This document shows positions 4,437 to 55,583 of a stretch of DNA of 64,000 nt, piece after piece. A program made the position numbers and the translations under genes. The stretch is taken from positions 1,202,501-1,266,500 of the forward strand of contig JAUPSS010000007.1 of NCBI GenBank assembly GCA_040285825.1, in the 5' to 3' direction. Under the pieces are notes generated by a model. It had not been told where the DNA came from. It made no database searches and worked only from the letters and a program-made list of their open reading frames with translations. The stretch's first letter is position 1, and every line of letters begins with the position of its first letter. The DNA is from Eukaryota sp. TZLM1-RC (taxonomy: Eukaryota; Protista; Metamonada: BaSk clade).

Positions 4437-5096
4437 GCTCTCGCCTGTGCTCTGGAGTGCAATTCCACTCTGACTGCATTGTATCTTGGATATAAAAACA
4501 TTGCCGATGAAGGCGCTAGTGCTCTCGCCCGTGCTCTGGAGAGCAATTCCACTCTGACTGAATTGTATCTTGGTGGAAACAACATTGGCCATGAAGGCGC
4601 TAGTGCTCTCGCCCGTGCTCTGGAGAGCAATTTTACTCTGACTGAATTGTATCTTGGTGGAAACAACATTGGCCATGAAGGCGCTAGTGCTCTCGCCCGT
4701 GCTCTGGAGAGCAATTCCACTCTGACTGTATTGAATCTTCTTTACAACAACATTACCGATGAAGGCGCTAGTGCTCTCGCCTGTGCTCTGGAGAGGAATT
4801 CCACTTTGACTCGATTGTATCTTGAGGACAACAACATTACCGATGAAGGCGCTAGTGCTCTCGCACGTGCTCTGGAGAGCAATTCCACTCTGGCTGTATT
4901 GAATCTTCTTTACAACAACATTGCCAATGAAGGCGCTAGTGCTCTCGCCTGTGCTCTGGAGAGGAATTCCACTCTGACTGAATTGTTTCTTGATGAAAAC
5001 CACATCAGCAACTCATCTAGATCCAAACTTCGCCAAATAGCGAAATTAATAAAAATTTATTACCTGTTGATAGCCTCTATTCAAATAAGGCATTGA
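4437..5096 (+). pseudogene. Truncated RI/NLRC3-like leucine-rich-repeat gene (7 x 28-aa repeats)
   Basis: 84-bp tandem units encode ITDEGASALARALExNSTLTxLxLxxNN. The 5' side abuts the Gypsy element. The 3' end after 5050 is sequence from the duplicated exonuclease/Fanzor block. Confidence 0.85.
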
Positions 5097-5197
5097 GAAC
5101 ATTAGGATCTTATTGTCTTCAGGATGCAATTCTTGTTTTCAAATTGTTTATTCTATTCCAAAGGGATAAAATAATAAATCAGTCATGGTCTACAGTA
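5051..5197 (+). pseudogene. C-terminal remnant of DEDDy 3'-5' exonuclease (ExoIII) in frame with Fanzor
   Basis: Reads KNLLPVDSLYSNKALRTLGSYCLQDAILVFKLFILFQRDKIINQSWSTV. YCLQD at 5111-5125 fits the YxxxD ExoIII motif. It is in the same frame as ATG 5267, interrupted by TAG 5198-5200. Confidence 0.75.
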
Positions 5198-7445
5198 TAG
5201 ACCTCTGTTTCATCTACAGCAAGGTATAGAGAATTAAAAGAAGAGTTACTTATAGCATCTGAGGTAATGACTGCTGTAAGACAACAAACTTCATTTTGTG
5301 TCAAACAGTATCTTTTAGTCAAATTCATGAAGAACAAAGATTTGACAAATTTTGACTACAAACTATTCTATCACACAATGATATGTTTGAAAAAATTATC
5401 TTCAAAGGTGCATCAGTTTAAATTAGCATTCGATAAACCAATACCAACGTTAAGTGATGATTTGAACAACTTTATATTTGGGTTAGGAACTTATGATAAC
5501 AACTCTGAATTCCCTGGGTATCGCCATTGTGTTACTGAATACACCGACACTTCATCAATTTGCCATATGCCTAGACTAGATTATAACCATGTAAATAGAT
5601 CATTTGAATACATGAGTCAATATGAAATGTGGCCTGCTTTTGAACTGAATATCAAAAGAAATTATCATTTATATATCAAAAGGTTCATTAATCATATAAT
5701 GGGAAAAAAAGATTTGGAAGATCTAATGAAGGAAAATTGGACAGAAGTTCTTCCAGATAGTTTGCAACATGTGAATTATATGCAACGCCAAAGATTTCTC
5801 AGTTTCTTAAGATTTCGTTTGAAAATTGTGAAGGATTTTATGACTGGTGGGGAGCGAAATGAGTTGATTAATTACTTGCAAAATTTTGGAAATTCTGATC
5901 ACCCATCTAATGTATATTTTTTACAAGAAGTTATTAAATATTTTGATGATTCTACAACCGATGTTGTGTTTGAAACCACAAATTATTTGATTGAAGAAGG
6001 TGTTACATTATTATTGGAGCACTGGTTGTCTATAATTTTCCCAAATATTATCCAAATTAATGAGGGCAATGGAACAGAAAATGTACAAGTTAAAATACTG
6101 CAATATACCCTTGAAAAGTATCCTTTACATTTTCTGAAACCATCATTTCAAATAATTCAATATTTAGAAGGAATTGAAGCAAAATTGTTTAATGTCATTC
6201 CACTTAATATGGGTAGTAAACCTGGATACTTTCCAATAGACACGCGAACATTGTGGGGTATTGGGAAAAATGCTATGGGTAATTTAGATGGTAAACCTCG
6301 ATTTAAACAAGTCCAAAATTATATGTGTATGTCTGATATTGGTAGTCTAACTCACAATCAACAGAATTCTTATTGGAACAGATGGTTCAACACTAATAAC
6401 AAATCTTTCAAAAAAATGGTTTCAAATTCAATAATTACGCAGTAACCAATGGTATAAGTATTTGTTTTCAGTTTGTGAGAGAAGATCTCGCAGGATTAAC
6501 CTTTAAACCTGATTCAAATATTGCCAAGGTATCAGTCTCTTATTTTGATCACCTTGATCCTGGAGATTATAGTGATCAAAATGTGGTTTTTGGTGATCTT
6601 GGAAAGAGAGATTTAATTCAATTTGGAGCACAGTCGGAAGAATCCAATTCAAATCCACTGAAAAAATATGAATGGATGAGGCTAACATATGGTGAATGGT
6701 CACGTCTCAATAGAAAACACGAACAAGTGTTACAATTTTGTGTTAGACAAAATAATGGTAATAGTGAAGACCAGACAATGACCATTCAGGAATGGAATTC
6801 GTGGTTACGTGATCATGATTCAAAAACTGTTGATTACCACAAATTCAGAGAGTTTATGTTGGCCAAGTGTAAACACTACAATGCAGTGAAACAATTTTAT
6901 AGTTTACCCTTATGGAGGATACATAATATCCAAAGTTATATCCATAGGCAAAAAACTGAAGAAAGAATTGTGAACAAGTTATTGACAACATTCGGTGGTA
7001 AAGACAAAATGGTATTGTGTATTGGGGACTTGGGTCGTAAACCAATCAGTAATCTCAAACATAGTCCCCCAACTCCTTCCAATAGATGGATAAGTTGTTT
7101 TCTTAGACGAGGTTTTCAAACTGTTCTAATTGATGAAAGCCATACTTCTTCAAAGTGTCCCTCTTGCATTGAAAAAAGTGTTTGAAACAACTATCAAAAC
7201 AAGGAATCCAATTCCTAAAAGTGCTGAAAAAAACACCGTTCAAATCTCCTCATGGGCTTTTTGGAATGTAGAAGTTCTCAGTGTATTAATGATGCAAAAA
7301 GCACGATGTAAAAAAGTCAGAAAGTAGAGAAGCAGTCAAGGCAAAGTATTGGAATAGGAACAAGATGGCTTGTTTGAATATGTTGAATGTATTTGATCAC
7401 TGGTTATCCGGTGAAGAAGGTAGGCCTGTTTATCTTAGAACTTAG
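5186..7445 (+). pseudogene. Fanzor1 (eukaryotic TnpB-like RNA-guided RuvC nuclease), copy 1, frameshifted
   Basis: RuvC-I VVFGDLGKRDLI, LCIGDLG...PPTP, RuvC-II VLIDESHTSSKCPSC, HGLLEC-x4-C zinc finger, RuvC-III region WNRNKMACLNM, and C-terminal RPVYL. Indels at ~6410 and 7170-7320 all fall in homopolymer runs. Confidence 0.9.
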
Positions 7446-7600
7446 TTCATTTTTACTGACTAGTAAAATCTAGTTATAGTTGGCATGTGCCATAATAAAG
7501 AATAGTGCATATAAAAATTCAAATTCATAGAATATTTCTACGGTGCTATGTGACTTAAATTTTCGTTTCAAAGAGTTGTGCATCTTCGCAATCCATCATA
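7446..7600 (+). ncRNA. Candidate Fanzor omegaRNA scaffold / element right end
   Basis: Lies immediately 3' of the Fanzor stop, where Fanzor/TnpB omegaRNAs are encoded. Hairpins: TTTTACT-gact-AGTAAAA, TGGC-atgt-GCCA, TAGAA-tat-TTCTA. Boundaries are inferred. Confidence 0.5.
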
Positions 7601-8887: not shown

Positions 8888-8899
8888 ATCAATTTTTTT

Positions 8900-10322: not shown

Positions 10323-10702
10323 TAATAGTCGTCCCATTAGTTATGATTTAATTTAATCAAGTGTGCAAATTCAATAAATACGAATTAAATTGTTATCAAT
10401 ATATCATATTAGTACAGCAATACCAAAGACATTTTAAATAACAAAAAATAATTTTACTATTAACCATCCACACGAAATTCTGAGGTTGCAAGACTTTTAG
10501 GCAGTAGGTTATGCAATCAACGACAATCAATCAACCGAGGTAACTACCTTATTAAAATTGATTCAAGTAAATAATTCTACTCAAAATTTGTATAACACAG
10601 ATGTTTAGTAAAATAATTCAATTGCCTATAAAAAAGAATTAAATCTGTGTTGAACATCAACACTTAAAACCAACAGTATACTACCTAGCTCAGAAGGCAC
10701 CA

Positions 10703-11010
10703 ATGTCAACAACGAATCCTTCTACTACCATTCCTCTGGCACGAGTCAGGCGAATAGCCAAAGCTGATCCAGACACTAATAACATATCCAAACCAGCACT
10801 TGCAGTACTCTCCCACATTGCTGTTTGTTGATACATTGCAAGTACTCATTACAGGTTTTATTTACAGAAACACTAACCAAGGAATCATACAAGTTCTGTG
10901 AACAGTCTAACAGGAAAACACTGCAGTATGGAGATGTAGCTCAAGCCTGTCATGAGATTGATCAGTTTGATTTTCTGGAAGAGGTGGTGCCCAAAACCAA
11001 GACAGCCTAA
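10703..11010 (+). CDS. H2A-like histone-fold protein (POLE4/DPB3, CHRAC1 or NF-YC type), 91 aa, two exons 10703-10822 and 10855-11010
   Basis: IPLARVRRIAKADPD...ISKPAL joins in frame to LFTETLTKESY...RKTLQYGDVAQACHEIDQFDFLEEVVP after removing the 32-nt GTTTGT...ACTCATTACAG intron. Confidence 0.88.
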
Positions 11011-11207
11011 CCTTTAACCCTAAAGATAGTCTAACGTGCATTTGCTTGGTTTTGTTCGTGGTTGATCCATTTCTTCCTCAGCTACTTTGTTTTTGGTTTT
11101 TGGTTTTATTGTAGGATTTTTGATAGGGTTTTTAATCCTTTGAAATGAATCAATTGCTTAAATTAAGTTTATTAAATAACATATGTACAACAAAAAAAGG
11201 AATATAA

Positions 11208-34400: not shown

Positions 34401-34908
34401 TAATTTTCGAACAATTTTTTCTTTCTTCATTACTGAAGGACGAAATTTTGATTTTGATGACAATAATTTTTTATCTTTAAGCAAAAAAATTTCCATAGCG
34501 GTGTAACATCCCATATGCCTTTTTTTAAATTGGTGGTAAATTTTCGAAAACTAATTGAAAAGGGGATGCAAGAAAGAGGACTTACCTGTGATGGAACACG
34601 TATTGGAGGCCTCAAGGAATCAACAACTTTACATGATTCACAAAAACGTAATGGTCGACCAGAAGAATTAATGCCCAAATTTTTGGTACAAAATATACAC
34701 TTATTATTCGGAGTATTTCTCCATTGAAACATTCATCTGCACGGAATCCAAGCTTGTGTAGGCCAGTCACCACAAATTCTTTGCAGTAACACTTGAGCAT
34801 GACAACATCAACATCAGCTCTGCGCAGGAAATCAACAACTGATATACATTCAAGTTCTTCTACTCCATCGTAGACAAGAACAGCAGCTTTTGGCTTAGTA
34901 GATGACAT
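31484..34908 (-). pseudogene. DJ-1/PfpI duplicate split by a retrotransposon insertion
   Basis: N-terminal half at 34714-34908 (MSSTKPK...FNGEI) and C-terminal half at 31484-31864 flank the insertion. Confidence 0.93.
31865..34713 (-). mobile_element. CRE-type RT-RLE non-LTR retrotransposon with 12-bp TSD (ORF 31914-34514, 866 aa, plus a frameshifted Cys-rich N-terminal part)
   Basis: TSD TATTTCTCCATT at 31853-31864 and 34714-34725, present once in the empty allele near 8510. Short oligo-A tail. Motifs KAPGPS, IRPIAIGE, QGDPLGP, YMDD, RRADL and KIKKY. Confidence 0.96.
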
Positions 34909-35629: not shown

Positions 35630-35786
35630 AACATGATGGATTGTGAAGATGCACAACTCTTTGAAACGAAAATTTAAGTCACATAGCACCGTAGAAATAT
35701 TCTATGAATTTGAATTTTTATATGCACTATTCTTTATTGTGGCGCATGCCAACTATGACTAGATTTTACTAGTCAACAAAAATAAA
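35630..35786 (-). ncRNA. Candidate omegaRNA region, copy 2
   Basis: Counterpart of 7446-7600; the substitutions in the first hairpin keep pairing through G-U. Confidence 0.48.
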
Positions 35787-37993
35787 CTAAGTTCCAAGAT
35801 AAACAGGCCTACCTTCTTCACAGGATAACCAATGATCAAATACATTCAACATATTCAAACAAGCCATCTTGTCCCTATTCCAATACTTTGCCTTGACTGC
35901 TTCTCTACTTTCTGACTTTTTACATCGTGCTTTTGCATCATTAATACACTGAGAACTTCTATATTCCAAAAGCCCATGAGGAGATTTGAACGGTGTTTTT
36001 TCAACACTTTTAGGAATTGAATTCCTTGTTTTGATAGTTGTTTCAAACACTTTTTCAAAGCAAGAAGGACACTTTGAAGAAGCATGGCTTTCATCAATTA
36101 GAACAGTTTGAAAACCTCGTCTAAGAAAACAACTTATCCATCTATTGGAAGGAGTTGGGGGACTATGTTTGAGATTACTGATTGGTTTACGACCCAAGTC
36201 CCTAATACACAATACCATTTTGTCTTTACCACCAAATGTTGTCAATAACTTGTTCACAATTCTTTCTTCAGTTTTTTAACTATGGATATAACTTTGGATA
36301 TTATGTATCGTCCATAAGGGTAAACTGTAAAATTGTTTCACTGCAGTGTAGTGTTTACACTTGGCCAACATAAACTCTCTGAATTTGTGGTAATCAACAG
36401 TTTTTGAATCATGATCACGTAACCACGAATTCCATTCCTGAATGGTCATTGTCTGGTCTTCACTATTACCATTATTTTGTCTAACACAAAATTGTAACAC
36501 TTGTTTGTGTTTTCTATTGAGACGTGACCATTCACCATATGTTAGCCTCATCCATTCATATTTTTTCAGTGGATTTGAATTGGATTCTTCCGACTGTGCT
36601 CCAAATTGAATTAAATCTCTCTTTCCAAGATCACCAAAAACCACATTTTGATCACTATAATCTTCAGGATCAAGGTGATTAAAATAAGAGACTGATACCT
36701 TGGCAATATTTGAATCAGGTTTAAAGGTTAATCCTGTGAGATCTTCTCTCACAAACTGAAAACAAATACTTATACCATTGGTTACTGCGTAATTATTGAA
36801 CTTGAAACCATTTTTTTTGAAAGATTTGTTATTAGTGTTGAACCATCTATTCCAATAAGAATTCTGTTGATTGTGAGTTAGAATACCAATATCAGACATA
36901 CACATATAATTTTGGACTTGTTTAAATCGAGGTTTACCATCTAAATTACCCTTAGAATTTTTCCCAATACCCCACAATGTGCGCGTGTCTATTGGAAAGT
37001 ATCCAGGTTTACTACTCATATTAAGTGGAATGACATTAAACAATTTTTCTTCAATTCCTTCTAAATATTGAATTATTTGAAATGATGGTTTCAGAAAATG
37101 TAAAGGATACTTTTCAAGGGTGTATTGCAGTATTTTAACTTGCACATTTTATGTTCCATTGCCCTCATTAATTTGGATAATATTTGGGAAAATTATAGAC
37201 AACCAGTGCTCCAATAATAATGTAACACCTTCTTCAATCAAATAATTTGTGGTTTCAAACACAACATCGGTTGTAGAATCATCAAAATATTTAATAACTT
37301 CTTGTAAGAAATATACATTAGATGGGTGAGCAGAATTTCCAAAATTTTGCAAGTAATTAATTAATTCATTTCGCTCCCCACCAGTCATAAAATCCTTCAC
37401 AATTTTCAAACGAAATCTAAAGAAACTGAGAAATCTTTGGCGTTGCATATAATTCAAATGTTGCAAACTATCTGGAAGAACTTCTGTCCAATTTTCCTTT
37501 TGATACATAAATGATAATTTCTTTTGATATTCAGTTCAAAAGCAGGCCACATTTCATATTGACTCATGTATTCAAATGATCTATTTACATGGTTATAATC
37601 TAGTCTAGGCATATGGCAAATTGATGAAGTGTCGGTGTATTCAGTAACACAATGGCGATACCCAGGGAATTCAGAGTTGTTATCATAAGTTCCTAACCCA
37701 AATATAAAGTTGTTCAAATCATCACTTAACGTTGGTATTGGTTTATCGAATGCTAATTTAAACCGATGCACCTTTGAAGATAATTTTTTCAAACATATCA
37801 TTGTGTGATAAAATAGTTTGTAGTCAAAATTTGTCAAATCTTCGTTCTTCATGAATTTGACTAAAACATACTGTTTGACACAAAATGAAATTTGTTGTCT
37901 TACAGCAGTCATTACCTCAGATGCTATAAGTAACTCTTCTTGTAATTCTCTATACCTTGCTGTAGATGAAACAGAGGTCTTTACTGTAGACCA
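35787..37993 (-). pseudogene. Fanzor1, copy 2 (nonsense codons and a 49-bp deletion)
   Basis: ORFs 37454-37912, 37149-37508, 36276-37145 and 35787-36257. RuvC triad present: FGDLG, IDESH, WNRDKMACLN. C-terminal RPVYL. Confidence 0.92.
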
Positions 37994-38011
37994 TGACTGA
38001 TTTATTATTTA

Positions 38012-39328
38012 ATCCCTTTGGAATAGAATAAACAATTTGAAAACATGAATTGCATCCTGAAGACAACAAGATCCTGATGTTCTCAATGCTTTATTTGAAT
38101 AGAGGTATCAACAGGTAATAAATTTTTAAACTCATCATGAAGTTTAAGTTTTGTTTCAGCGGGTAAATGGTATGCTAAATTGTTCAATGAAGCTCCATAT
38201 CTAATTTTAATAAATTTTTTGGCAAACAAAAAAGTGTCCAAAATAGTGAAATTTTCATAAAACTGAATTACTTCTCTCCAACGTCGATGAAAACATAATT
38301 CATTTAGACCAATTCTTTGGGACAAAATTGGAAAAGTGATTCCAAAATGTGATAATCGCACAGCCAACACAGGTAAATCAAAATTAAAAATATTATGGCC
38401 TAAGAAACCAACAATTTTTTTTATCATAAGTGAATTCTGCAAATGACTTCAATAGTTGTTGTTCATGATCAAAGTTATTCAATGAAACATCAAAAACTGG
38501 TTTGTTATCATTGGTCCATGATAACACTCGTCTCGTTCCCTCTAAATTAGCAACATAATTTATACTCGAGAAATGGAAAATAGTATCCCCATTATGGTCA
38601 ATTTCAAACAAAATCATAGAAATCATTAAAATTTCCTGCCGTTCTAAAAAAAGCTGTTGTTCTAACAATTGCTCATCATCAGTCATTTGGCGACGTCGCT
38701 CTGACTGTGATTGCTTTTGTTGAGCTCGCAAATTGTCTAAAGTTTTATTAATATCTTTTTTCTTGGTTATTTCAACACCAATTTCCTTGGTTTCAATATC
38801 AATTGAACAAATAAGAGGGCGATCAGAGGTACTAACTTCTTGATGAAGAACAGGATCATCAATAAAAGGTTTCTTTTTAACCTTTTTCTTCTTTCCTCGA
38901 ATCACATCAATTTTTTTAAATTCATTAATACTTGAAACAGAAGAATTAGGTGCAACAAGATTTTGAAAATCTCTGGGTTTCTGAGGCAGTTCAGTACTAC
39001 TTCTGTTTTGGACAAACCTACGTCGACTCCTCTTTGATGAATGTTCGGCCGGAATCGGAAATCTTTGACTGTTTCTTAATGATTTTGAATAACCCAATGA
39101 TTTTCTAATTTTGTAATATTGGGTTCTACGTTGTATTGGGGTCAAGGATGAATCTTTTGGATCAATTGAATCAATTTGGGATAGTGTTGAAGGTTCTTGT
39201 TGCAGTCTGTTTTGCTGATTGGAAGAAATCACGGCAGAAGTGATTGGTCTCATAATTTTTACAGAAGAAACAACCTTTGCGGGAACAACAGACGATGATG
39301 ATCGTCTGACAGTTTTTGAAGGAGGGGT
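38012..39328 (-). pseudogene. Basic/low-complexity region plus DEDDy (PolB/DnaQ-like) 3'-5' exonuclease domain
   Basis: ExoI ICSIDIET (~38790-38812), ExoII GFLGHNIFNFDLPVL, ILDTFLFAKK, SLNNLAYH and ExoIII CCLQD (YCLQD in copy 1). Frameshifts in a T-run at ~38420 and a 1-nt deletion at ~38105. Confidence 0.85.
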
Positions 39329-39367
39329 TTATTCCACTGATGACTTTCTCTTTTTGGGCTGACAATA

Positions 39368-39430
39368 TGGACCAGGGTTCGCCTCTACATCACCATGTGC
39401 TGTGAGCAACTGTTGTTTCAATGCTGCGCG
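39368..39430 (-). other. 2A-like StopGo (ribosome skipping) peptide AALKQQLLTAHGDVEANPG|P
   Basis: Exact D(V/I)ExNPGP consensus with the preceding G and an upstream LL helix (GDVEANPGP at 39368-39394). Same frame as ORF 38393-39253, separated only by TAA 39329-39331. Confidence 0.85.
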
Positions 39431-39575
39431 GAACTGATATACATTGACTGAAATATTGGCTGTTTCCGTCAACATCTCGTTTAAAGAAACAAAGTTGTGA
39501 TGATTTTCTATAAAGTACTGTACATATTTCAAACAAAAAATTCCACTATCATTCACACTTTGAACTCTAAGAAAT
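39431..39575 (-). pseudogene. C-terminal remnant of a Ulp1/SENP-like (C48) cysteine protease
   Basis: VQSVNDSGIFCLKYVQYF...YQFRAALKQQL resembles QxNxxDCGxFxxxY...R. The catalytic Cys position is AGT (Ser), one change from TGT. The upstream part is replaced by the CRE array. Confidence 0.55.
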
Positions 39576-39624
39576 TGAACTCTAAGAAATTAAGTAAAAT
39601 TTTTGAAGACAAATTAATTTATTT

Positions 39625-42600
39625 TTAAAACTGGAACAATAATTGAGATAAAAATGACCATCTAGAAATCAATATCCTCCAAACAAGCGTCATTATTACT
39701 TAACCTACTCACAGCATTACGTTCATATTCTACACCAATAGCTAAAAGCGCCTTTGAAATCATTGTAGGAATAGACTGGAAAATGCTTAAAACAATTCCA
39801 TTTAACCAGAAAGTGGAGTTCATTGTTTTACCAGACCTATTCAGTAACACTTGTTTGAAATTTTCCAAAAAGTGCAACCCTGAAGGTCCAATATTGCCAA
39901 AAAAGAAATTGCAAACGCGCAAACTGATATTTCACATGTTCCACTCTATCTAACTGTGCCAAAGGTTCTTTGTCTCTTTTATCTTTTTTTTTCGGCATTA
40001 AATAACGGCCAATCAGCGGAATAGCATAAACTAGTAACACAATTTTTGCAAACATCAACTGAGAAAACATCTACAACATTGCGAACATCATCGATACCTG
40101 GAGCCACTACATCTGCCCTTCTTTTACCAAAGGAATCATCAGGTTGATCTGAAGACAGCTTACGTACTAGTGGCTCAATAAATGCCTCTATATTGAAACT
40201 TTTGCACATGGCATATAATTGATCACGAACTGGGGCGTGAACACTTGTGCGATAAGTTATAAAATATTTACAGTTTAACATATGGGAAAGCGTAACAACA
40301 CTCTTGTCGCGACAAATTAAATCATTTGGTAATGAACAAGACCATAGAAAACATCTCATTCTCATTGCAGTGGTCCATTGGTGATCATAAAGTAGAAGGC
40401 CATAAATGTTGGGAATTTGGGAGATCAGGCAATTTGAGCAACTGTCTTCAAGGTCAATCAAAAAGTTTGCAAAAACGGGATTTTTTTTCCTAAGCCAAGC
40501 TAAGACGTACAATATAATTCAAGTTTTCCTAAACTTTCAAGATTTTTGTTCTGCAATTTTTCGAAAGTCAGTGGTAAGGAGAGCAAGCTTCTTGAAGGAA
40601 GTTCCACAATATCAGAGGGAAACATTTGGCCCAAATATTACGTGAAAGAGTTTCAATTTCCTGTTGCAAAGAAATAAGATAAGGGCTGCCACAATTTTCA
40701 ATGAGATGAATTTTTTCAGGAAAACGATTCACAAATTCACAAATATAATTCTTTTCACCTCCAATAAATGCAGCTTTACAAAGATAGCTTAATTTATGAA
40801 AATCAACACCACCAAAATTTGTACCACAAAAAATGTGGCTTCGCAACTGAGATTTATCAATTTCCAATAATTTTGCTAAAAAAATTGGTTCTTTGTTCAT
40901 TGAATATCGACAAAACTCCAAAAAAAATTGATGCTGATGTTGATTTCAAAATATGAGTAAATTTTCCAGAATAACAAAATTTTAGGAAAAAGAATTTCAA
41001 ATGTTTCTCAATATTTCAATTTTCTATTTATTCTAATTCATTTCCAAATTGGATCAACAGAGTCGAAAATTGGCCTTTGACTTCTTCAATATTTCCGAGA
41101 TAACAACCCAAAAAACGAAAACCAGACTGATCATAATTGATAAAGGGGACATTGAATCATTAATGAAAGAATCAATTGGTTCATCTCCAATAACCAAACA
41201 CTTGGAAATATTCAATGAGAGACCAGTAACTTCATAACGCTTTTGAATAAAAGTTGCTATTTGTTTAAGAATTGTAATAGGTGCAATTACAGAAATGTCA
41301 TCCATATATGCTACAATATCTATTTCTGGGAATTTTTATTTTAATTCGCACATTAATGGATGCATTGCCAGACAAAAGAAAAAAGGATCAAGTGGATCGC
41401 CTTGTTTAACACCTGAAGAAGGAATCAGGTCAAAGTTTTCATAGACCATTGTGGATGACTTTCCATAAAATGAATAGAAAAAGGCTCAAAAAAGAAAATG
41501 CTTTCGCAGCAAAGGTAAAATGGAAGAACGAGATACAGAATTGAAAACATTCTTAAAATCTAAATTGAAGACGTAATTAGAATCACTAGAATTAAAAAAC
41601 ATATCCGACGAAAGAGCAGCAGAAGAAGCACCATCAATTGTTTTGATTCCAAATTGAACTCGACTGAAAAATTCCTTTGCTTTTTCCCAATTCTATCGAA
41701 AACAAGAGACGCAAGAATTCTTGAAAACGATTCTCCAATTGCAATTGGACGGATATTGGATTGACTTTGCTTGAGGGCAATTAAGCGAGCACTGGTCATC
41801 TCAAAAGAAACTGTAATTTCTAACGTAGGAAGATTGTTGAAAAAAAGAACAAGATCATCAGCAATTTCAGGAAACTGTCCAACTGCTGATTTGATCATGT
41901 CAAAATTTAACAACAGTTCATTGAATTCATTGAGAACAGAGTTTTTTGCTGATTTATTACACGTAGAACCAGGAATATTGAAAAGTCACTTATTTTCTTC
42001 AGCAAATTTGGGGGTATTGGATTTTCTAAATCTTCAATTTTGTGTCAATCAGCATTCTTGGCTGGTGGAAAAAAATTTTATTTATGAATTTTCTCGTAGA
42101 TTTCCTGATGATTCTCATCTGTTAGTTCCCAATTGCAGTCCTTATTTGTATGAGTTATCTTGTGAACTTGCAAAATTGCCACCACAAATTTGGACCAAAT
42201 GTTGTCCTCAATCAATTCAAGAAATTCCAAACCGATCTCTTTTTGATTTACAGTTTTGCTGTTCAAAGCTTCAAAAAAAATTGTCAAAGATTTTTGAAAG
42301 CTTGGTTTTTTTTAAAAAACTGGAATATTTATTGAGATAAAAATAACCATCTAGAATTCAATATCGTTCAAACAAGCGTTACTATTGCTAAACCTACTTA
42401 CAGCATTACGTTCATATTCTACACCGACAGCTCAAAGCGCCTTAGAAATCATTGTAGGAATAGACTGGAAAATGCTTAAAACAATTCTATTTAACCAAAA
42501 AGTGGAGTTCATTGTTTTACCAGACCTATTCAGTAACACTTGTTTGAAATTTTCCAAGAAGTGCAACCCTGAAGGTCCAATATTGCCAAAAAAGAAATTG

Positions 42601-45600
42601 CAAACGCGCAAACTGATATTTCACATGTTCCACTCTATCTAACTGTGCCAAAGGTTCTTTGTCTCTTTTATCTTTTTTTCGGCATTAAATAACGGCGAAT
42701 CAGCGGAATAGAATAAACTAGCAACACAATTTTTGCAAACATCAACTGAGAAAACATCTACAACATTGCGAACATCATCGATACCTGGAGCCACTACATC
42801 TGCCATTCTTTTACCAAAGGAATCATCAGGTTGATCTGAAGACAGCTTACGTACTAGTGGCTCAATAAATGCCTCTATATTGAAACCTTTGCACATGGCA
42901 TATAATTGATCACGAACTGGGGCATGAACACTTAATGGATGCATTGCCAGACAAAAGAAAAAAGGATCAAGTGGATCGCCTTGTTTAACACCTGAAGAAG
43001 GAATCAGGTCAAAGTTTTCATAGACCAATGTGGATGACTTTCCATAAAATGAATAGAAAAAGGCTCAAAAAAGAAAATGCTTTCGCAGCAAAGGTAAAAT
43101 GGAAGAACGAGATACAGAATTGAAAGCATTCTTAAAATCTAAATTGAAGACGTAATTAGAATCACTAGAATTAAAAAACATATCCGACGAAAGAGCAGCA
43201 GAAGAAGCACCATCAATTGTCTTGATTCCAAATTGAACTGGACTGAAAAATTCCTTGGCTTTTTCCCAATTCTATCGAAAACAAGAGACGCAAGAATTCT
43301 TGAAAACGATTCTCCAATTGCAATTGGACGGATATTGGATTGACTTTGCTTGAGGGCAATTAAGCGAACACTGGTCATCTCAAAAGAAACTGTAATTTCT
43401 AACGAAGATTGTTGAGAAAAGGAACAAGATCATCAGCAATTTCAGGACACTGTCCAACTGCTGATTTGATCATGTCAAAATTTAACAACAGTTCATTGAA
43501 TTCATTGAGAACAGAGTTTTTTGCTGATTATTACACGTAGAACCAGGAATATTGAAAAGTCACTTATTTTCTTCAGCAAATTTGGGGGTATTGGATTTTC
43601 TAAATCTTCAATTTTGTGTCAATCAGCATTCTTGGGTGGTGGAAAAAATTTTATTTATGAATTTTCTCGTAGATTTCCTGATGATTCTCATCTGTTAGTT
43701 CCCAATTGCAGTCCTTATTTGTTTGAGTTATCTTGTGAACTTGAAAAATTGCCACCACAAATTTGGACCAAATGTTGTCCTCAATCAATTCAAGAAATTC
43801 CAAACCGATCTCTATTTGATTTACAGTTTTGCTGTTCAAAGCTTCAAAAAGAAATTGTCAAAGATTTTTGAAAGCTTGGTTTTTTTTAAAAACTGGAATA
43901 TTTATTGAGATAAAAATAACCATCTAGAATTCAATATCGTTCAAACAAGCGTTACTATTGCTAAACCTACTTACAGAATTACGTTCATATTCTACACCGA
44001 CAGCTAAAAGTGCCTTAGAAATCATTGTAGGAATAGACTGGAAAATGCTTAAAACAATTCTATTTAACCAGAAAGTGGAGTTCATTGTTTTACCAGACCT
44101 ATTCAGTAACACTTGTTTGAAATTTTCCAAAAAGTGCAACCCTGAAGGTCCAATATTGCCAAAAAAGAAATTGCAAACGCGCAAACTGATATTTCACATG
44201 TTCCACTCTATCTGACTGTGCCAAAGGTTCTTTGTCTCTTTTATCTTTTTTTTCGGCATTAAATAACGGCCAATCAGCGGAATAGAATAAACTAGTAACA
44301 CAATTTTTGCAAACATCAACTGAGAAAACATCTACAACATTGCGAACATCATCGATACCTAGAGCCACTACATCTGCCCTTCTTTTACCAAAGGAATCAT
44401 CAGGTTGATCTGAAGACAGCTTACGTACTAGTGGCTCAATAAATGCCTCTATATTGAAACTTTTGCACATGGCATATAGTTGGTCACGAACTGGGTCATG
44501 AACACTCGAGCGATAAGTTATAAAATATTTACAGTTCAAAATATGGGAAAGCGTAACAACACTCTTGCAGCGACAAATTAAATCATTTGGTAATGAACAA
44601 GACCATAGAAAACATCTCATTCTCATTGCAGTGGTCCATTGGTGATCATAACGTAGAAGGCCATAAATGTTGGGAATTTGGGAGATCAGGCAATTTGAGC
44701 AACTGTCTTCAAGATCAATCAAAAAGTTTGCAAAAACGAGATTTTTTTCCTAAGCCAAGCAAAGACGTACAATATAATTCAAGTTTTCCTAAACTTTCAA
44801 GATTTTTTTTCTGCAATTTTGCGAAAGTCAGTGGTAAGGAGAGCAAGCTTCTTGAAGGAAGTTGCACAATATCAGAGGGAAACATTTGGCTCAAATATTA
44901 GGTGACAGAGTTTCAATTTCCTGTTGCAAAGAAATAAGATAAGGGCTGCCACAATTTTCAATGAGATGAATTTTTTCAGGAAAACGATTCACAAATTCAC
45001 AAATATAATTCTTTCCACCTCCAATAAATGCAGCTTTACAAAGATAGCTTAATCTATGAAAATCAACACCACCAAAATTTGTACCACAAAAAATGTGGCT
45101 TCGCAACTGAGATTTATCAATTTGCAATAATTTTGCTAAAAAATTGGTTCTTTGTTCATTGAATATCGACAAAACTCCAAAAAAAATTGATGCTGATGTT
45201 GATTTCAAAATATGAGTAAATTTTCCAGAATAACAAAATTTTAGGAAAAAGAATTTCAAATGTTTCTCAATATTTCAATTTTCTATTTATTCTAATTCAT
45301 TTCCAAATTGGACCAACAGAGTCGAAAGTTGGCCTTTGACTTCTTCAATATTTCCGAGATAACAACCCAAAAAACGAAAACCAGACTGATCATAATTGAT
45401 AAAGGGGACATTGAATCATTAATGAAAGAATCAATTGGTTCATCTCCAATAATTAAACACTTGGAAATATTCAATGAGAGACCAGTATCTTCATAACGCT
45501 TTTGAATAAAAGTTGCTATTTGTTTAAGAATTGTAATAGGTGCAATTACAGAAATGTCATCCATATATGCTACAATATCTATTTCTGGGAATTTTTATTT

Positions 45601-48600
45601 TAATTCGCACATTAATGGATGCATTGCCAGACAAAAGAAAAAAGGATCAAGTGGATCGCCTTGTTTAACACCTGAAGAAGGAATCAGGTCAAAGTTTTCA
45701 TAGACCAATGTGGATGACTCTTCATAAAATGAAAAGAAAAAGGCTCAAAAAAGAAAATGCTTTCGCAGCAAAGGTAAAATGGAAGAACGAGATACAGAAT
45801 TGAAAGCATTCTTAAAATCTAAATTGAAGATGTAATTAGAATCACTAGAATTAAAAAACATATCCGACGAAAGAGCAGCAGAAGAAGCACCATCAATTGT
45901 CTTGATTCCAAATTGAACTGGACTGAAAAATTCCTTGGTTTTTTCCCAATTCTATCGAAAACAAGAGACGCAAGAATTCTTGAAAACGATTCTCCAATTG
46001 CAATTGGACGGATATTGGATTGACTTTTCTTGAGGGCAATTAAACGAGCACTGGTCATCTCAAAAGAAACTTTAATTTTTAACGTAAGAAGATTGTTGAA
46101 AAAAAGAACAAGATCATCGGCAATTTCAGGACACTGTCCAACTGCTGATTTGATCATGACAAAATTTAACAACAGTTCATTGAATTCATATATTAATTTA
46201 TGAAAATCAACACCACCAAAATTTGTACCACAAAAAATGTGGCTTCGCAACTGAGATTTATCAATTTCCAATAATTTTGCTAAAAAATTGGTTCTTTGTT
46301 CATTGAATATCGACAAAACTCCAAAAAAAATTGATGCTGATGTTGATTTCAAAATATGAGTAAATTTTCCAGAATAACAAAATTTTAGGAAAAAGAATTT
46401 CAAATGTTTCTCAATATTTCAATTTTCTATTTATTCTAATTCATTTCCAAATTGGATCAACAGAGTCGAAAGTTGGCCTTTGACTTCTTCAATATTTCCG
46501 AGATAACAACCCAAAAACGAAAACCAGACTGATCATAATTGATAAAGGGGACATTGAATCATTAATGAAAGAATCAATTGGTTCATCTCCAATAATTAAA
46601 CACTTGGAAATATTCAATGAGAGACCAGTATCTTCATAACGCTTTTGAATAAAAGTTGCTATTTGTTTAAGAATTGTAATAGGTGCAATTACAGAAATGT
46701 CATCCATATATGCTACAATATCTATTTCTGGGAATTTTTATTTTAATTCGCACATTAATGGATGCATTGCCAGACAAAAGAAAAAAGGATCAAGTGGATC
46801 GCCTTGTTTAACACCTGAAGAAGGAATCAGGTCAAAGTTTTCATAGACCAATGTGGATGACTCTTCATAAAATGAAAAGAAAAAGGCTCAAAAAAGAAAA
46901 TGCTTTCGCAGCAAAGGTAAAATGGAAGAACGAGATACAGAATTGAAAGCATTCTTAAAATCTAAATTGAAGATGTAATTAGAATCACTAGAATTAAAAA
47001 ACATATCCGACGAAAGAGCAGCAGAAGAAGCACCATCAATTGTCTTGATTCCAAATTGAACTGGACTGAAAAATTCCTTGGCTTTTTCCCAATTCTATCG
47101 AAAACAAAAGACGCAAGAATTCTTGAAAACGATTCTCCAATTGCAATTGGACGGATATTGGATTGACTTTGCTTGAGGGCAATTAAGCGAACACTGGTCA
47201 TCTCAAAAGAAACTGTAATTTCTAACGAAGATTGTTGAGAAAAGGAACAAGATCATCAGCAATTTCAGGACACTGTCCAACTGCTGATTTGATCATGTCA
47301 AAATTTAACAACAGTTCATTGAATTCATTGAGAACAGAGTTTTTTGCTGATTATTACACGTAGAACCAGGAATATTGAAAAGTCAATTATTTTCTTCAGC
47401 AAATTTGGGGGTATTGGATTTTCTAAATCTTCAATTTTGTGTCAATCAGCATTCTTGGGTGGTGGAAAAAATTTTATTTATGAATTTTCTCGTAGATTTC
47501 CTGATGATTCTCATCTGTTAGTTCCCAATTGCAGTCCTTATTTGTATGAGTTATCTTGTGAACTTGAAAAATTGCCACCACAAATTTGGACCAAATGTTG
47601 TCCTCAATCAATTCAAGAAATTCCAAACCGATCTCTATTTGATTTACAGTTTTGCTGTTCAAAGCTTCAAAAAGAAATTGTCAAAGATTTTTGAAAGCTT
47701 GGTTTTTTTTAAAAACTGGAATATTTATTGAGATAAAAATAACCATCTAGAATTCAATATCGTTCAAACAAGCGTTACTATTGCTAAACCTACTTACAGA
47801 ATTACGTTCATATTCTACACCGACAGCTAAAAGTGCCTTAGAAATCATTGTAGGAATAGACTGGAAAATGCTTAAAACAATTCTATTTAACCAGAAAGTG
47901 GAGTTCATTGTTTTACCAGACCTATTCAGTAACACTTGTTTGAAATTTTCCAAAAGTGCAACCCTGAAGGTCCAATATTGCCAAAAAAAGAAATTGCAAA
48001 CGCGCAAACTGATATTTCACATGTTCCACTCTATCTGACTGTGCCAAAGGTTCTTTGTCTCTTTTATCTTTTTTTCGGCATTAAATAACGGCCAATCAGC
48101 GGAATAGAATAAACTAGTAACACAATTTTTGCAAACATCAACTGAGAAAACATCTACAACATTGCGAACATCATCGATACCTAGAGCCACTACATCTGCC
48201 CTTCTTTTACCAAAGGAATCATCAGGTTGATCTGAAGACAGCTTACGTACTAGTGGCTCAATAAATGCCTCTATATTGAAACTTTTGCACATGGCATATA
48301 GTTGGTCACGAACTGGGTCATGAACACTCGAGCGATAAGTTATAAAATATTTACAGTTCAAAATATGGGAAAGCGTAACAACACTCTTGCAGCGACAAAT
48401 TAAATCATTTGGTAATGAACAAGACCATAGAAAACATCTCATTCTCATTGCAGTGGTCCATTGGTGATCATAACGTAGAAGGCCATAAATGTTGGGAATT
48501 TGGGAGATCAGGCAATTTGAGCAACTGTCTTCAAGATCAATCAAAAAGTTTGCAAAAACGAGATTTTTTTCCTAAGCCAAGCAAAGACGTACAATATAAT

Positions 48601-51600
48601 TCAAGTTTTCCTAAACTTTCAAGATTTTTTTTCTGCAATTTTGCGAAAGTCAGTGGTAAGGAGAGCAAGCTTCTTGAAGGAAGTTGCACAATATCAGAGG
48701 GAAACATTTGGCTCAAATATTAGGTGACAGAGTTTCAATTTCCTGTTGCAAAGAAATAAGATAAGGGCTGCCACAATTTTCAATGAGATGAATTTTTTCA
48801 GGAAAACGATTCACAAATTCACAAATATAATTCTTTCCACCTCCAATAAATGCAGCTTTACAAAGATAGCTTAATCTATGAAAATCAACACCACCAAAAT
48901 TTGTACCACAAAAAATGTGGCTTCGCAACTGAGATTTATCAATTTCCAATAATTTTGCTAAAAATTGGTTCTTTGTTCATTGAATATCGACAAAACTCCA
49001 AAAAAAATTGATGCTGATGTTGATTTCAAAATATGAGTAAATTTTCCAGAATAACAAAATTTTAGGAAAAAGAATTTCAAATGTTTCTCAATATTTCAAT
49101 TTTCTATTTATTCTAATTCATTTCCAAATTGGATCAACAGAGTCGAAAGTTGGCCTTTGACTTCTTCAATATTTCCGAGATAACAACCCAAAAACGAAAA
49201 CCAGACTGATCATAATTGATAAAGGGGACATTGAATCATTAATGAAAGAATCAATTGGTTCATCTCCAATAATTAAACACTTGGAAATATTCAATGAGAG
49301 ACCAGTATCTTCATAACGCTTTTGAATAAAAGTTGCTATTTGTTTAAGAATTGTAATAGGTGCAATTACAGAAATGTCATCCATATATGCTACAATATCT
49401 ATTTCTGGGAATTTTTATTTTAATTCGCACATTAATGGATGCATTGCCAGACAAAAAGAAAAAAAGGATCAAGTGGATCGCCTTGTTTAACACCTGAAGA
49501 AGGAATCAGGTCAAAGTTTTCATAGACCAATGTGGATGACTCTTCATAAAATGAAAAGAAAAAGGCTCAAAAAGAAAATGCTTTCGCAGCAAAGGTAAAA
49601 TGGAAGAACGAGATACAGAATTGAAAGCATTCTTAAAATCTAAATTGAAGATGTAATTAGAATCACTAGAATTAAAAAACATATCCGACGAAAGAGCAGC
49701 AGAAGAAGCACCATCAATTGTCTTGATTCCAAATTGAACTGGACTGAAAAATTCCTTGGTTTTTCCCAATTCTATCGAAAACAAGAGACGCAAGAATTCT
49801 TGAAAACGATTCTCCAATTGCAATTGGACGGATATTGGATTGACTTTTCTTGAGGGCAATTAAACGAGCACTGGTCATCTCAAAAGAAACTTTAATTTTT
49901 AACGTAAGAAGATTGTTGAAAAAAAGAACAAGATCATCGGCAATTTCAGGACACTGTCCAACTGCTGATTTGATCATGACAAAATTTAACAACAGTTCAT
50001 TGAATTCATATATTAATTTATGAAAATCAACACCACCAAAATTTGTACCACAAAAAATGTGGCTTCGCAACTGAGATTTATCAATTTCCAATAATTTTGC
50101 TAAAAAATTGGTTCTTTGTTCATTGAATATCGACAAAACTCCAAAAAAAATTGATGCTGATGTTGATTTCAAAATATGAGTAAATTTTCCAGAATAACAA
50201 AATTTTAGGAAAAAGAATTTCAAATGTTTCTCAATATTTCAATTTTCTATTTATTCTAATTCATTTCCAAATTGGATCAACAGAGTCGAAAGTTGGCCTT
50301 TGACTTCTTCAATATTTCCGAGATAACAACCCAAAAAACGAAAACCAGACTGATCATAATTGATAAAGGGGACATTGAATCATTAATGAAAGAATCAATT
50401 GGTTCATCTCCAATAATTAAACACTTGGAAATATTCAATGAGAGACCAGTATCTTCATAACGCTTTTGAATAAAAGTTGCTATTTGTTTAAGAATTGTAA
50501 TAGGTGCAATTACAGAAATGTCATCCATATATGCTACAATATCTATTTCTGGGAATTTTTATTTTAATTCGCACATTAATGGATGCATTGCCAGACAAAA
50601 AGAAAAAAAGGATCAAGTGGATCGCCTTGTTTAACACCTGAAGAAGGAATCAGGTCAAAGTTTTCATAGACCAATGTGGATGACTCTTCATAAAATGAAA
50701 AGAAAAAGGCTCAAAAAAGAAAATGCTTTCGCAGCAAAGGTAAAATGGAAGAACGAGATACAGAATTGAAAGCATTCTTAAAATCTAAATTGAAGATGTA
50801 ATTAGAATCACTAGAATTAAAAAAACATATCCGACGAAAGAGCAGCAGAAGAAGCACCATCAATTGTCTTGATTCCAAATTGAACTGGACTGAAAAATTC
50901 CTTGGCTTTTTCCCAATTCTATCGAAAACAAAAGACGCAAGAATTCTTGAAAACGATTCTCCAATTGCAATTGGACGGATATTGGATTGACTTTGCTTGA
51001 GGGCAATTAAGCGAACACTGGTCATCTCAAAAGAAACTGTAATTTCTAACGAAGATTGTTGAGAAAAGGAACAAGATCATCAGCAATTTCAGGACACTGT
51101 CCAACTGCTGATTTGATCATGTCAAAATTTAACAACAGTTCATTGAATTCATTGAGAACAGAGTTTTTTGCTGATTATTACACGTAGAACCAGGAATATT
51201 GAAAAGTCAATTATTTTCTTCAGCAAATTTGGGGGTATTGGATTTTCTAAATCTTCAATTTTGTGTCAATCAGCATTCTTGGGTGGTGGAAAAATTTTAT
51301 TTATGAATTTTCTCGTAGATTTCCTGATGATTCTCATCTGTTAGTTCCCAATTGCAATCCTTATTTGTATGAGTTATCTTGTGAACTTGAAAAATTGCCA
51401 CCACAAATTTGGACCAAATGTTGTCCTCAATCAATTCAAGAAATTCCAAACCGATCTCTATTTGATTTACAGTTTTGCTGTTCAAAGCTTCAAAAAGAAA
51501 TTGTCAAAGATTTTTGAAAGCTTGGTTTTTTTTAAAAACTGGAATATTTATTGAGATAAAAATAACCATCTAGAATTCAATATCGTTCAAACAAGCGTTA

Positions 51601-54600
51601 CTATTGCTCAACCTACTTACAGAATTACGTTCATATTCTACACCGACAGCTAAAAGTGCCTTAGAAATCATTGTAGGAATAGACTGGAAAATGCTTAAAA
51701 CAATTCTATTTAACCAGAAAGTGGAGTTCATTGTTTTACCAGACCTATTCAGTGACACTTGTTTGAAATTTTCCAAAAAGTGCAACCCTGAAGGTCCAAT
51801 ATTGCCAAAAAAGAAATTGCAAACGCGCAAACTGATATTTCACATGTTCCACTCTATCTAACTGTGCCAAAGGTTCTTTGTCTCTTTTATCTTTTTTTTT
51901 CGGCATTAAATAACGGCCAATCAGCGGAATAGAATAAACTAGTAACACAATTTTTGCAAACATCAACTGAGAAAACATCTACAACATTGCGAACATCATC
52001 GATACCTGGAGCCACTACATCTGCCCTTCTTTTACCAAAGGAATCATCAGGTTGATCTGAAGACAGCTTACGTACTAGTGGCTCAATAAATGCCTCTATA
52101 TTGAAACTTTTGCACATGGCATATAGTTGGTCACGAACTGGGTCATGAACACTCGAGCGATAAGTTATAAAATATTTACAGTTCAAAATATGGGAAAGCG
52201 TAACAACACTCTTGCAGCGACAAATTAAATCATTTGGTAATGAACAAGACCATAGAAAACATCTCATTCTCATTGCAGTGGTCCATTGGTGATCATAACG
52301 TAGAAGGCCATAAATGTTGGGAATTTGGGAGATCAGGCAATTTGAGCAACTGTCTTCAAGATCAATCAAAAAGTTTGCAAAAACGAGATTTTTTTCCTAA
52401 GCCAAGCAAAGACGTACAATATAATTCAAGTTTTCCTAAACTTTCAAGATTTTTTTTCTGCAATTTTGCGAAAGTCAGTGGTAAGGAGAGCAAGCTTCTT
52501 GAAGGAAGTTGCACAATATCAGAGGGAAACATTTGGCTCAAATATTAGGTGACAGAGTTTCAATTTCCTGTTGCAAAGAAATAAGATAAGGGCTGCCACA
52601 ATTTTCAATGAGATGAATTTTTTCAGGAAAACGATTCACAAATTCACAAATATAATTCTTTCCACCTCCAATAAATGCAGCTTTACAAAGATAGCTTAAT
52701 TTATGAAAATCAACACCACCAAAATTTGTACCACAAAAAATGTGGCTTCGCAACTGAGATTTATCAATTTGCAATAATTTTGCTAAAAAATTGGTTCTTT
52801 GTTCATTGAATATCGACAAAACTCCAAAAAAAATTGATGCTGATGTTGATTTCAAAATATGAGTAAATTTTCCAGAATAACAAAATTTTAGGAAAAAGAA
52901 TTTCAAATGTTTCTCAATATTTCAATTTTCTATTTATTCTAATTCATTTCCAAATGGGATCAACAGAGTCGAAAGTTGGCCTTTGACTTCTTCAATATTT
53001 CCGAGATAACAACCCAAAAAACGAAAACCAGACTGATCATAATTGATAAAGGGGACATTGAATCATTAATGAAAGAATCAATTGGTTCATCTCCAATAAC
53101 CAAACACTTGGAAATATTCAATGAGAGACCAGTATCTTCATAACGCTTTTGAATAAAAGTTGCTATTTGTTTAAGAATTGTAATAGGTGCAATTACAGAA
53201 ATGTCATCCATATATGCTACAATATCTATTTCTGGGAATTTTTATTTTAATTCGCACATTAATGGATGCATTGCCAGACAAAAGAAAAAAGGATCAAGTG
53301 GATCGCCTTGTTTAACACCCGAAGAAGGAATCAGGTCAAAGTTTTCATAGACCAATGTGGATGACTCTTCATAAAATGAAAAGAAAAAGGCTCAAAAAAG
53401 AAAATGCTTTCGCAGCAAAGGTAAAATGGAAGAACGAGATACAGAATTGAAAGCATTCTTAAAATCTAAATTGAAGATGTAATTAGTATCACTAGAATTA
53501 AAAAACATATCCGACGAAAGAGCAGCAGAAGAAGCACCATCAATTGTCTTGATTCCAAATTGAACTGGACTGAAAAATTCCTTGGTTTTTTCCCAATTCT
53601 ATCGAAAACAAGAGACGCAAGAATTCTTGAAAACGATTCTCCAATTGCAATTGGACGGATATTGGATTGACTTTTCTTGAGGGCAATTAAACGAGCACTG
53701 GTCATCTCAAAAGAAACTTTAATTCTTAACGTAAGAAGATTGTTGAAAAAAAGAACAAGATCATCGGCAATTTCAGGACACTGTCCAACTGCTGATTTGA
53801 TCATGTCAAAATTTAACAACAGTTCATTGAATTCATTGAGAACAGAATTTTTTGCTGATTTATTACACGTAGAACCAGGAATATTGAAAAGTCACTTATT
53901 TTCTTCAGCAAATTTGGGGGTATTGGATTTTCTAAATCTTCAATTTTGTGTCAATCAGCATTCTTGGGTGGTGGAAAAAATTTTATTTATGAATTTTCTC
54001 GTAGATTTCCTGATGATTCTCATCTGTTAGTTCCCAATTGCAGTCCTTATTTGTATGAGTTATCTTGTGAACTTGAAAAATTGCCACCACAAATTTGGAC
54101 CAAATGTTGTCCTCAATCAATTCAAGAAATTCCAAACCGATCTCTATTTGATTTACAGTTTTGCTGTTCAAAGCTTCAAAAAGAAATTGTCAAAGATTTT
54201 TGAAAGCTTGGTTTTTTTTTAAAAACTGGAATATTTATTGAGATAAAAATAACCATCTAAAATTCAATATCGTTCAAACAAGCGTTACTATTGCTAAACC
54301 TACTTACTTACGTTCATATTCTACACCGACAGCTAAAAGTGCCTTAGAAATCATTGTAGGAATAGACTGGAAAATGCTTAAAACAATTCTATTTAACCAG
54401 AAAGTGGAGTTCATTGTTTTACCAGACCTATTCAGTAACACTTGTTTGAAATTTTCCAAAAAGTGCAACCCTGAAGGTCCAATATTGCCAAAAAAGAAAT
54501 TGCAAACGCGCAAACTGATATTTCACATGTTCCACTCTATCTGACTGTGCCAAAGGTTCTTTGTCTCTTTTATCTTTTTTTTCGGCATTAAATAACGGCC

Positions 54601-55583
54601 AATCAGCGGAATAGAATAATCTAGTAACACAATTTTTGCAAACATCAACTGAGAAAACATCTACAACATTGCGAACATCATCGATACCTGGAGCCACTAC
54701 ATCTGCCCTTCTTTTACCAAAGGAATCATCAGGTTGATCTGAAGACAGCTTACGTACTAGTGGCTCAATAAATGCCTCTATATTGAAACTTTTGCACATG
54801 GCATATAGTTGGTCACGAACTGGGTCATGAACACTCGAGCGATAAGTTATAAAATATTTACAGTTCAAAATATGGGAAAGCGTAACAACACTCTTGCAGC
54901 GACAAATTAAATCATTTGGTAATGAACAAGACCATAGAAAACATCTCATTCTCATTGCAGTGGTCCATTGGTGATCATAACGTAGAAGGCTATAAATGTT
55001 GGGAATTTGGGAGATCAGGCAATTTGAGCAACTGTCTTCAAGATCAATCAAAAAGTTTGCAAAAACGAGATTTTTTTCCTAAGCCAAGCTAAGATGTACA
55101 ATATAATTCAAGTTTTCTAAAACTTTCAAGATTTTTTTCTGCAATTTTGCGAAAGTCAGAGGTAAGGAGAGCAAGCTACTTGAAGGAAGTTCCACAACAT
55201 CAGAGGGGAAACATTTGGCCCAAATATTAGGTGAAAGAGTTTCAATTTCCTGTTGCAAAGAAATAAGATAAGGGCTGCCACAATTTTCAATGAGATGAAT
55301 TTTTTCAGGAAAACGATTCACAAATTCACAAATATAATTCTTTCCACCTCCAATAAATGCAGCTTTACAAAGATAGCTTAATTTATGAAAATCAACACCA
55401 CCAAAAATTGTACCACAAAAAATGTGGCTTCGCAACTGAGATTTATCAATTTCCAATAATTTTGCTAAAAAAAATTGGTTCTTTGTTCATTGAATATCGA
55501 CAAAACTCCAAAAAAAATTGATGCTGATGTTGATTTCAAAATATGAGTAAATTTTCCAGAATAACAAAATTTTAGGAAAAAGA
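39625..55583 (-). repeat. ~16-kb head-to-tail tandem array of a dead CRE retrotransposon unit that includes an inverted ~0.39-kb piece of another CRE family
   Basis: The unit marker ctggaa..t.attgagataaaa recurs at 39631, 42320, 43893, 47716, 51539 and 54226, giving periods of 2689, 1573, 3823, 3823 and 2687. Frameshifts are shared between units. Confidence 0.95.

Follow-up and report, generated by a model that had tools for sequence, protein, structure and literature searches.

Fanzor1 proteins such as SpuFz1, PpFz1 and GtFz1 share the RuvC I–III motifs, a cysteine zinc finger and a common fold, and no linked transposase is reported for the Spu and Gt Fanzor1 loci (PMC10432273). The Fanzor1 elements CRe-1/2/3 and MCi-2 have intact 3′ ends, frequent 5′ truncations or variable 5′ regions, target-site duplications (TSDs) that vary in length and no transposase of their own (PMC3627910). 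These features recur in the element described here, which lies on the minus strand of a 64,000-nucleotide stretch of contig JAUPSS010000007.1 (the window). Unlike described Fanzor1 proteins, its Fanzor is preceded by a family-B DNA polymerase (PolB) exonuclease within a polyprotein predicted to be split at 2A sites, with an Ulp1 module and, in one family, a DEAH helicase. The window belongs to strain TZLM1-RC (assembly GCA_040285825.1), whose proteins the Fanzor piece matches at 98%; we take this strain to be the free-living anaerobic metamonad Skoliomonas litria. CRe elements differ further in having Helitron2 ends and stand-alone Fanzor genes, whereas in the Skoliomonas element neither RepHel nor a Helitron left end was found.

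The additional modules have parallels elsewhere. Non-LTR (long terminal repeat) retrotransposons of the L1Tc and APE-type clades carry DxExNPGP in frame with their enzymes; the Skoliomonas element, in contrast, has two 2A sites and neither reverse transcriptase (RT) nor APE, and is predicted to release an RNA-guided nuclease. Ulp1-bearing DNA transposons (KAONASHI MULEs, Ginger) share the Peptidase C48 cargo; the Skoliomonas element is without a DDE transposase and its protease is bracketed by 2A sites. In the engineered TREX2–Cas9 and T5–CasMINI proteins (PMC13370227, PMC12337685) an exonuclease is tethered to an RNA-guided nuclease. The Skoliomonas fusion is a natural, eukaryotic counterpart that uses a Pol δ-like proofreading domain, its activity being predicted from sequence. 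A sequence-only reading of the window had known of no earlier description of this architecture, and none was found in the literature searched, which included few subscription papers: a full-text search for Fanzor together with 2A peptide returned unrelated reviews and tool papers only, and the main Fanzor surveys searched mention neither an exonuclease nor a natural fusion. A 2026 survey of 2A peptides lists viruses and retroelements and does not mention DNA transposons; the present case adds a DNA element with neither RT nor transposase to the carriers of 2A polyproteins.

An exonuclease–Fanzor1 fusion in one ancestral frame

The window copy is a dead, 5′-truncated copy of a Skoliomonas Fanzor1 mobile element. 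Eight minus-strand open reading frame (ORF) pieces between 39556 and 35787 had been proposed to descend from one frame joining an Ulp1-like protease, a 2A peptide, a DEDDy (PolB-type) exonuclease and Fanzor1. Pieces and lesions are found at the positions given, and each part could be identified. A search of other copies for stops kept between the parts found the frame open across every junction. Besides window copy 1, the analysis covered 12 loci, among them L002, L003 and L004, L012 of GEM-RC1 and L010 of TZLM3-RCL, from three Skoliomonas genomes; pieces of the window polyprotein served as separate queries.

Seven lesions interrupt the window copy (Table 1). Copy 1 (5050–8518) aligns to 38128–34714 at 96% identity and is open at the five that lie within this duplicated block, as had been claimed. 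The remaining two, previously repaired by inference only, are now confirmed as well: L002 and L003 have a sense codon in place of the TAA at 39331–29, and L002, L003, L004 and a Logan contig from an independent sample lack the extra base at ~38423. The seven lesions are therefore private to the window copy. The stops and the 49-nt deletion are unlikely to be assembly errors; the 1-nt slips in homopolymers may be. Missense changes also affect two catalytic sites, replacing the protease cysteine with serine (39547–45) and, in the window copy only, the Exo III tyrosine with cysteine (38067).

From the 2A proline to the stop the fusion spans ~1,206 aa, in agreement with the ~1,200 aa estimated earlier. 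The exonuclease passes Pfam DNA_pol_B_exo1 (single window fragments gave a weak PolB exonuclease match only) and has the motifs Exo I DxE, Exo II N..FD and Exo III Y..D; its best match in the Protein Data Bank (PDB) is Pol δ (E 4e-12), with archaeal PolB at 1e-7. The Fanzor matches SpuFz1 (E 5.6e-8) and PpFz1 (1e-7) in phmmer and contains the C-terminal RuvC motif D...TS–C4 zinc finger...R[D/N]. In Foldseek, an AlphaFold model of moderate confidence (mean pLDDT 56) retrieved Fz1 structures as the top six, followed by PolB exonucleases. Best sequence and structure matches are thus Fanzor1, not Fanzor2 or TnpB. At the third RuvC position the family has Asn or Ser, and the window copy alone has Asp; because the same D-E-N triad, with Asn, is active in GtFz1 (PMC11423790), this is no sign of a dead family. 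As in Fanzor1, a structured right end follows the stop. By its sequence and fold, the fusion is a Fanzor1 member with a new architecture.

2A motifs, protease and leader

The full family order is leader, 2A, Ulp1/SENP protease, 2A, nuclear localisation signal (NLS)/linker, Pol δ-like exonuclease and Fanzor1, in one frame of ~1,950 codons. It is best seen in L003, the longest copy, which runs 2 kb further 5′ than the window copy. Its leader begins with an ATG and comprises a signal peptide, NPTT repeats, a possible β-helix region (the leads are below threshold) and a hydrophobic segment; a first 2A, a protease of ~225 aa and a second 2A, equivalent to that of the window, follow. L002 matches this anatomy from mid-leader onward. 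Uninterrupted ORFs cover 789 codons in L003, from the protease tail through the N-terminal half of the Fanzor, and 2A–exonuclease–Fanzor in P0022.

The in-frame 2A motif, (G/H)D(V/I)ExNPGP, is canonical in the window copy, L002, L003 and L012. It occurs once in the window (chance expectation about 5e-5), and five divergent families share the position of their 2A motifs. In three TZLM3-RCL loci (L006, L009, L011) a variant, DVHxNPGP, has His for the conserved Glu and is preceded by a Trp-x-x-DL motif.

On profile and motif evidence the protease is of the Ulp1/SENP type (Peptidase C48). The N-terminal part from L002/L003 matched Peptidase_C48 in 25 of 30 Atlas matches, and the profile retrieved SENP1 (E 4e-4), SENP8 (E 0.01, over a longer stretch) and Ulp1 from the PDB; the Cys-containing part gave a weak match to Ulp2/SENP7. 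The catalytic order His-Asp-Gln-Cys is present in L002 and L003 as HW, DS and Q..DCG. A homologue search with the window's own protease piece gave no match. The upstream moiety had been thought to be probably a transposase, and this did not hold: in L003 this part consists of a leader of the signal-peptide/membrane type, another 2A and the protease, and no transposase domain was found within the element in any of 12 loci or upstream of the protease in L003.

Relatives of the fusion

The exonuclease–Fanzor fusion is kept in three Skoliomonas genomes at 27–53% identity, with the Exo I, II and III residues retained. The TZLM1-RC family A and the GEM-RC1 family cluster with strong support. In GEM-RC1, L012 encodes a hydrophobic leader, then 2A, a C48 protease (Pfam E 4e-4) and a linker; past an interrupted stretch come a second 2A, the exonuclease and the Fanzor. 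Several TZLM3-RCL families have leader–2A–exonuclease–Fanzor and no protease, and P0032 (TZLM3-RCL, L010 7830–16163) is an uninterrupted 2,027-aa ORF of DEAH helicase, exonuclease and whole Fanzor, without 2A. Its helicase is SF2 DEAH, not Pif1. This natural ORF could be expressed without repair. The leaders of six families show no mutual similarity. With unrelated leaders, and with protease, 2A and helicase differing by family, what stays constant is the fusion core, and the modules upstream of it are variable.

Outside Skoliomonas, no relative of the fusion was found in metagenome, viral-contig or prokaryotic-genome searches, within the reach of a word-index protein search (proteins 0.55–1.75 times the query length) and a single all-length HMMER search with a 121-aa exonuclease piece. 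The metagenome scan returned archaeal-type PolB only, the viral contigs one stand-alone Fanzor without exonuclease, and the prokaryotic genomes no fusion.

In L010 a 682-aa Cys/His-knuckle ORF precedes P0032, with an overlap between the two frames; L005 corresponds to the L010 element with an internal deletion and has identical start and end. Diverged Fanzor remnants lie beside several copies (L002 7017–7561 and 14228–14732(-); L005 3605–4144(-); L007 8687–9592), the last resembling the short TnpB/Fanzor2 type. LTR retrotransposons occur within Fanzor genes of two species (L003 13259–20283; L011 13310–19524).

Right end and candidate omegaRNA

The element has a fixed right end at window position 35740: four unrelated flanks lie beyond it and the Logan contig match stops there. 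A candidate omegaRNA had been placed in an interval reaching 35630, which proved too long by about 90 nt. Positions 35630–35739 are flank, found also in copy 1 only through their inclusion in the duplicated block, and fold no better than shuffled sequences (z +0.97). Given this end, the omegaRNA candidate comprises two short hairpins plus a flank guide. Across two to three independent lineages, 91% of paired cells are preserved as pairs and three pairs show two-sided change; Rfam gave no match. In the helicase family the right end is a 14-bp hairpin (z -4.3). A likely candidate omegaRNA, judged from these sequences, is the right end, perhaps beginning inside the ORF, plus 15–20 nt of flank.

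Left ends are ragged and different in every copy. In 5 of 11 copies the left limit and the right end are joined by direct repeats of 7–10 nt (null p 0 to 0.075), four of the five overlapping the element's last bases; these came from wider windows tested with a null, an earlier narrow-window test having given none. The candidate TSDs at L008 9402/13004, L012 8020/13399, L011 9728/20275 and L005 9797 take in the element's final 3–4 bases, as though target and right end shared microhomology (like a target-adjacent motif (TAM), or priming). Right ends do not generally dock at host start codons: the first ATG lies at +8, +26, +56 and +107.

Table 1 Features of the window copy, copy 1 and the adjoining array (window positions)
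Feature	Position	Strand	Remark
CRE-type retrotransposon array	39584..55583	minus	abuts broken 5′ end; outside element
Protease C-terminal catalytic motif (Q..Cys)	39545..39568	minus	Cys codon is Ser here
Final protease helices and spacer to 2A	39410..39544	minus
2A/StopGo motif, second of the family's two	39368..39409	minus	predicted skip Gly 39373-71 / Pro 39370-68
SV40-like basic NLS candidate PKKRK	39344..39358	minus	directly 3′ of skip site; putative
Basic Ser-rich linker, ~180 aa, probably disordered	38810..39343	minus	second basic cluster 38896-38870; private stop 39331-29
Lesion: TAA	39331-29	minus	serine codon in L002 and L003
Family-B (Pol δ-like) DEDDy 3′–5′ exonuclease	38012..38809	minus	frameshifts ~38423, 38106
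Exo I	38809-38789	minus
Lesion: extra base (T-run)	~38423	minus	not in L002, L003, L004 or Logan contig
Exo II	38400-38377	minus
Lesion: 1-nt deletion	after 38106	minus	open in copy 1
Exo III	~38071-38050	minus
Fanzor1, from REC/WED part	35787..38011	minus	stop 35789-87; lesions 38011, 37500, 37151, 36278
Lesion: TAA	38011-09	minus	open in copy 1
Lesion: 49-nt deletion	after 37500	minus	open in copy 1
Lesion: TAA	37151-49	minus	open in copy 1
RuvC-I D	36635-36615	minus
Lesion: TAA	36278-76	minus	open in copy 1
RuvC-II E	36098-36075	minus
Cys zinc finger	36071-35940	minus
RuvC-III	35882-35859	minus
Right-end hairpin A, 7-bp stem; omegaRNA scaffold candidate	35756..35775	minus	double-sided changes in GEM-RC1 copies
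Terminal hairpin B	35740..35751	minus	final element base 35740
First ~20 nt of flank	35720..35739	minus	predicted guide if TnpB/Fanzor rule holds
Copy 1: 5′-truncated exonuclease tail and Fanzor	5050..7492	plus	3′ flank same as window copy

Proposed mechanism and alternatives

We consider it probable that the copy in the window is the decayed remnant of a transposase-less Fanzor1 element specific to Skoliomonas, one that encodes a 2A-split polyprotein and is inserted from its right end by machinery acting in trans. Ribosome skipping at both 2A sites would yield three proteins. The leader, with its signal peptide and one membrane segment, would enter the endoplasmic reticulum; the protease would stay soluble and probably remove SUMO or NEDD8, easing silencing. 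The 1,206-aa fusion, starting with the PKKRK region, would enter the nucleus, load omegaRNA from the right end and flank, and cut flank-matching DNA. The tethered exonuclease would then trim the 3′ ends of the cut, preventing simple re-ligation and favouring repair that copies from an element-bearing template. New insertions would most likely proceed from the right end and break off at random points. For the question of how Fanzors help elements to spread in eukaryotes, an exonuclease-bearing lineage makes the sequence 'cut, then process ends' directly testable.

The machinery acting in trans is quite possibly the RT/endonuclease of CRE retrotransposons. The element itself has the short direct repeats in 5 of 11 copies, no RT and no poly(A). 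An HUH/rolling-circle helper is a more doubtful candidate. The 3′ hairpins and 5′ truncation fit Helitrons, and no Rep was present in the fetched loci. Insertion by the fusion itself appears unlikely, and by some other machinery rather more so. We would also call unlikely the broader proposal of a new class of transposase-less eukaryotic elements, in which the fusion mobilises itself by guided cut, end trimming and copy-in from the right end while the 2A sites carry exchangeable cargo.

Several observations weigh against the mechanism that we prefer. No fully intact copy was seen in TZLM1-RC, where P0007 is a gene model that splices out 25 nt at a frameshift. Differences among the TZLM1-RC copies look near neutral and give no sign that linker or leader is under selection. 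Both the skipping at the two 2A sites and transcription as one unit are predicted from sequence. The GEM-RC1 protease has the His and Asp only and no recognisable catalytic Cys motif. The direct repeats are short and not present in 6 of 11 copies, and poly(A) is lacking. The role of a tethered exonuclease is not obvious either, because a 3′–5′ exonuclease removes the 3′ tails needed for strand invasion.

A tentative but serious alternative is that the exonuclease–Fanzor is the sole real gene of the element, insulated by the first 2A from an upstream frame of captured host pieces or junk, with leader and protease as optional passengers. The dissimilar leaders of the six families point this way, as do the TZLM3-RCL families with 2A and no protease, the helicase family without 2A, and the truncated L002 copy, which gained an in-frame ATG from its flank; the N-terminal 2A of L1Tc-type retrotransposons offers a precedent (cited in PMC11512398). 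Mere passengers are, however, harder to reconcile with the 2A–protease–2A order, which recurs in GEM-RC1 although the fusion there is only ~50% identical, and with the clean signal peptide and membrane segment of the L003 leader. An autonomous DNA transposon whose upstream moiety is a protease-bearing transposase of the MULE, Ginger or Zisupton type is very improbable. Ulp1 domains are common transposon cargo, and a single pogo-like DDE remnant is present 2.3 kb upstream of L005, but this remnant is outside the region common to L005 and L010, the L003 and L012 frames have no transposase upstream of the protease, and terminal inverted repeats, a linked DDE transposase and a fixed left end were all lacking in the loci examined.

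Viruses can carry 2A motifs, PolB and clan-CE proteases. Fanzor1 is itself present in large DNA viruses (PMC3627910), and the exonuclease, protease and 2A could together represent an endogenised fragment of a Polinton-like or giant virus. We regard this as highly improbable: the exonuclease lies closest to eukaryotic Pol δ and lacks a polymerase domain, the protease is nearest SENP/Ulp1, unrelated host genes form the flanks, genes for capsid or packaging are absent, no fused relative was found in viral contigs, and a check for Polinton/virus hallmarks (pPolB polymerase, capsid, ATPase, adenain protease) found none. Finally, the fusion might serve the host as an RNA-guided nuclease for 'cut and chew' defence or for genome rearrangement. 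Retention in three species would suit such a role, and the helicase, exonuclease and guided nuclease in the single chain of P0032 recall processive DNA destruction. It is nonetheless improbable, given that the copies are numerous, scattered, truncated and for the most part dead, each with a different flank (guide), and that no syntenic single-copy locus was seen.

Copy 1 and neighbouring sequences

Copy 1 abuts the end of a leucine-rich repeat (LRR) gene, has a 7-nt direct repeat at 5047 and 7493, and looks like a truncated insertion there. It also has lesions of its own: position 5198 holds a stop and 6409 a frameshift, and there are five 1-nt insertions. The latter (7171–7309) sit within 140 bp, are missing from locus L001, a third version of copy 1 with 99% identity, and may be long-read assembly errors. 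Because the window copy has the same 3′ flank and a longer 5′ reach, it may be a recombinant of a copy-1-like locus and a longer copy. No empty site was found.

Homology to the element begins at 39569 in the window copy, where a 16-kb tandem array of decayed CRE retrotransposon units breaks off its 5′ end; the missing 5′ part was not found elsewhere within the 64-kb window. The junction (39569–39600) carries a 15-nt tandem duplication. Here and in L002 (9148–9911), two different CRE retroelements, oppositely oriented, lie within ~10 bp of one and the same site in the protease gene, a possible target preference.

The window, which is neither viral nor human DNA, also contains host genes (DJ-1, U-box, PH, LRR), many CRE-type retrotransposons and, at 20052–26141, an intronless ORF of 2,029 aa with no Pfam match. 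An inverted duplication (5050–11092 and 38128–29281) covers Fanzor, flank, DJ-1 and a retroelement. The DJ-1/PfpI gene is intact in copy 1 (8507); in copy 2 (31864–34714) it is interrupted by a CRE element with a 12-bp TSD.

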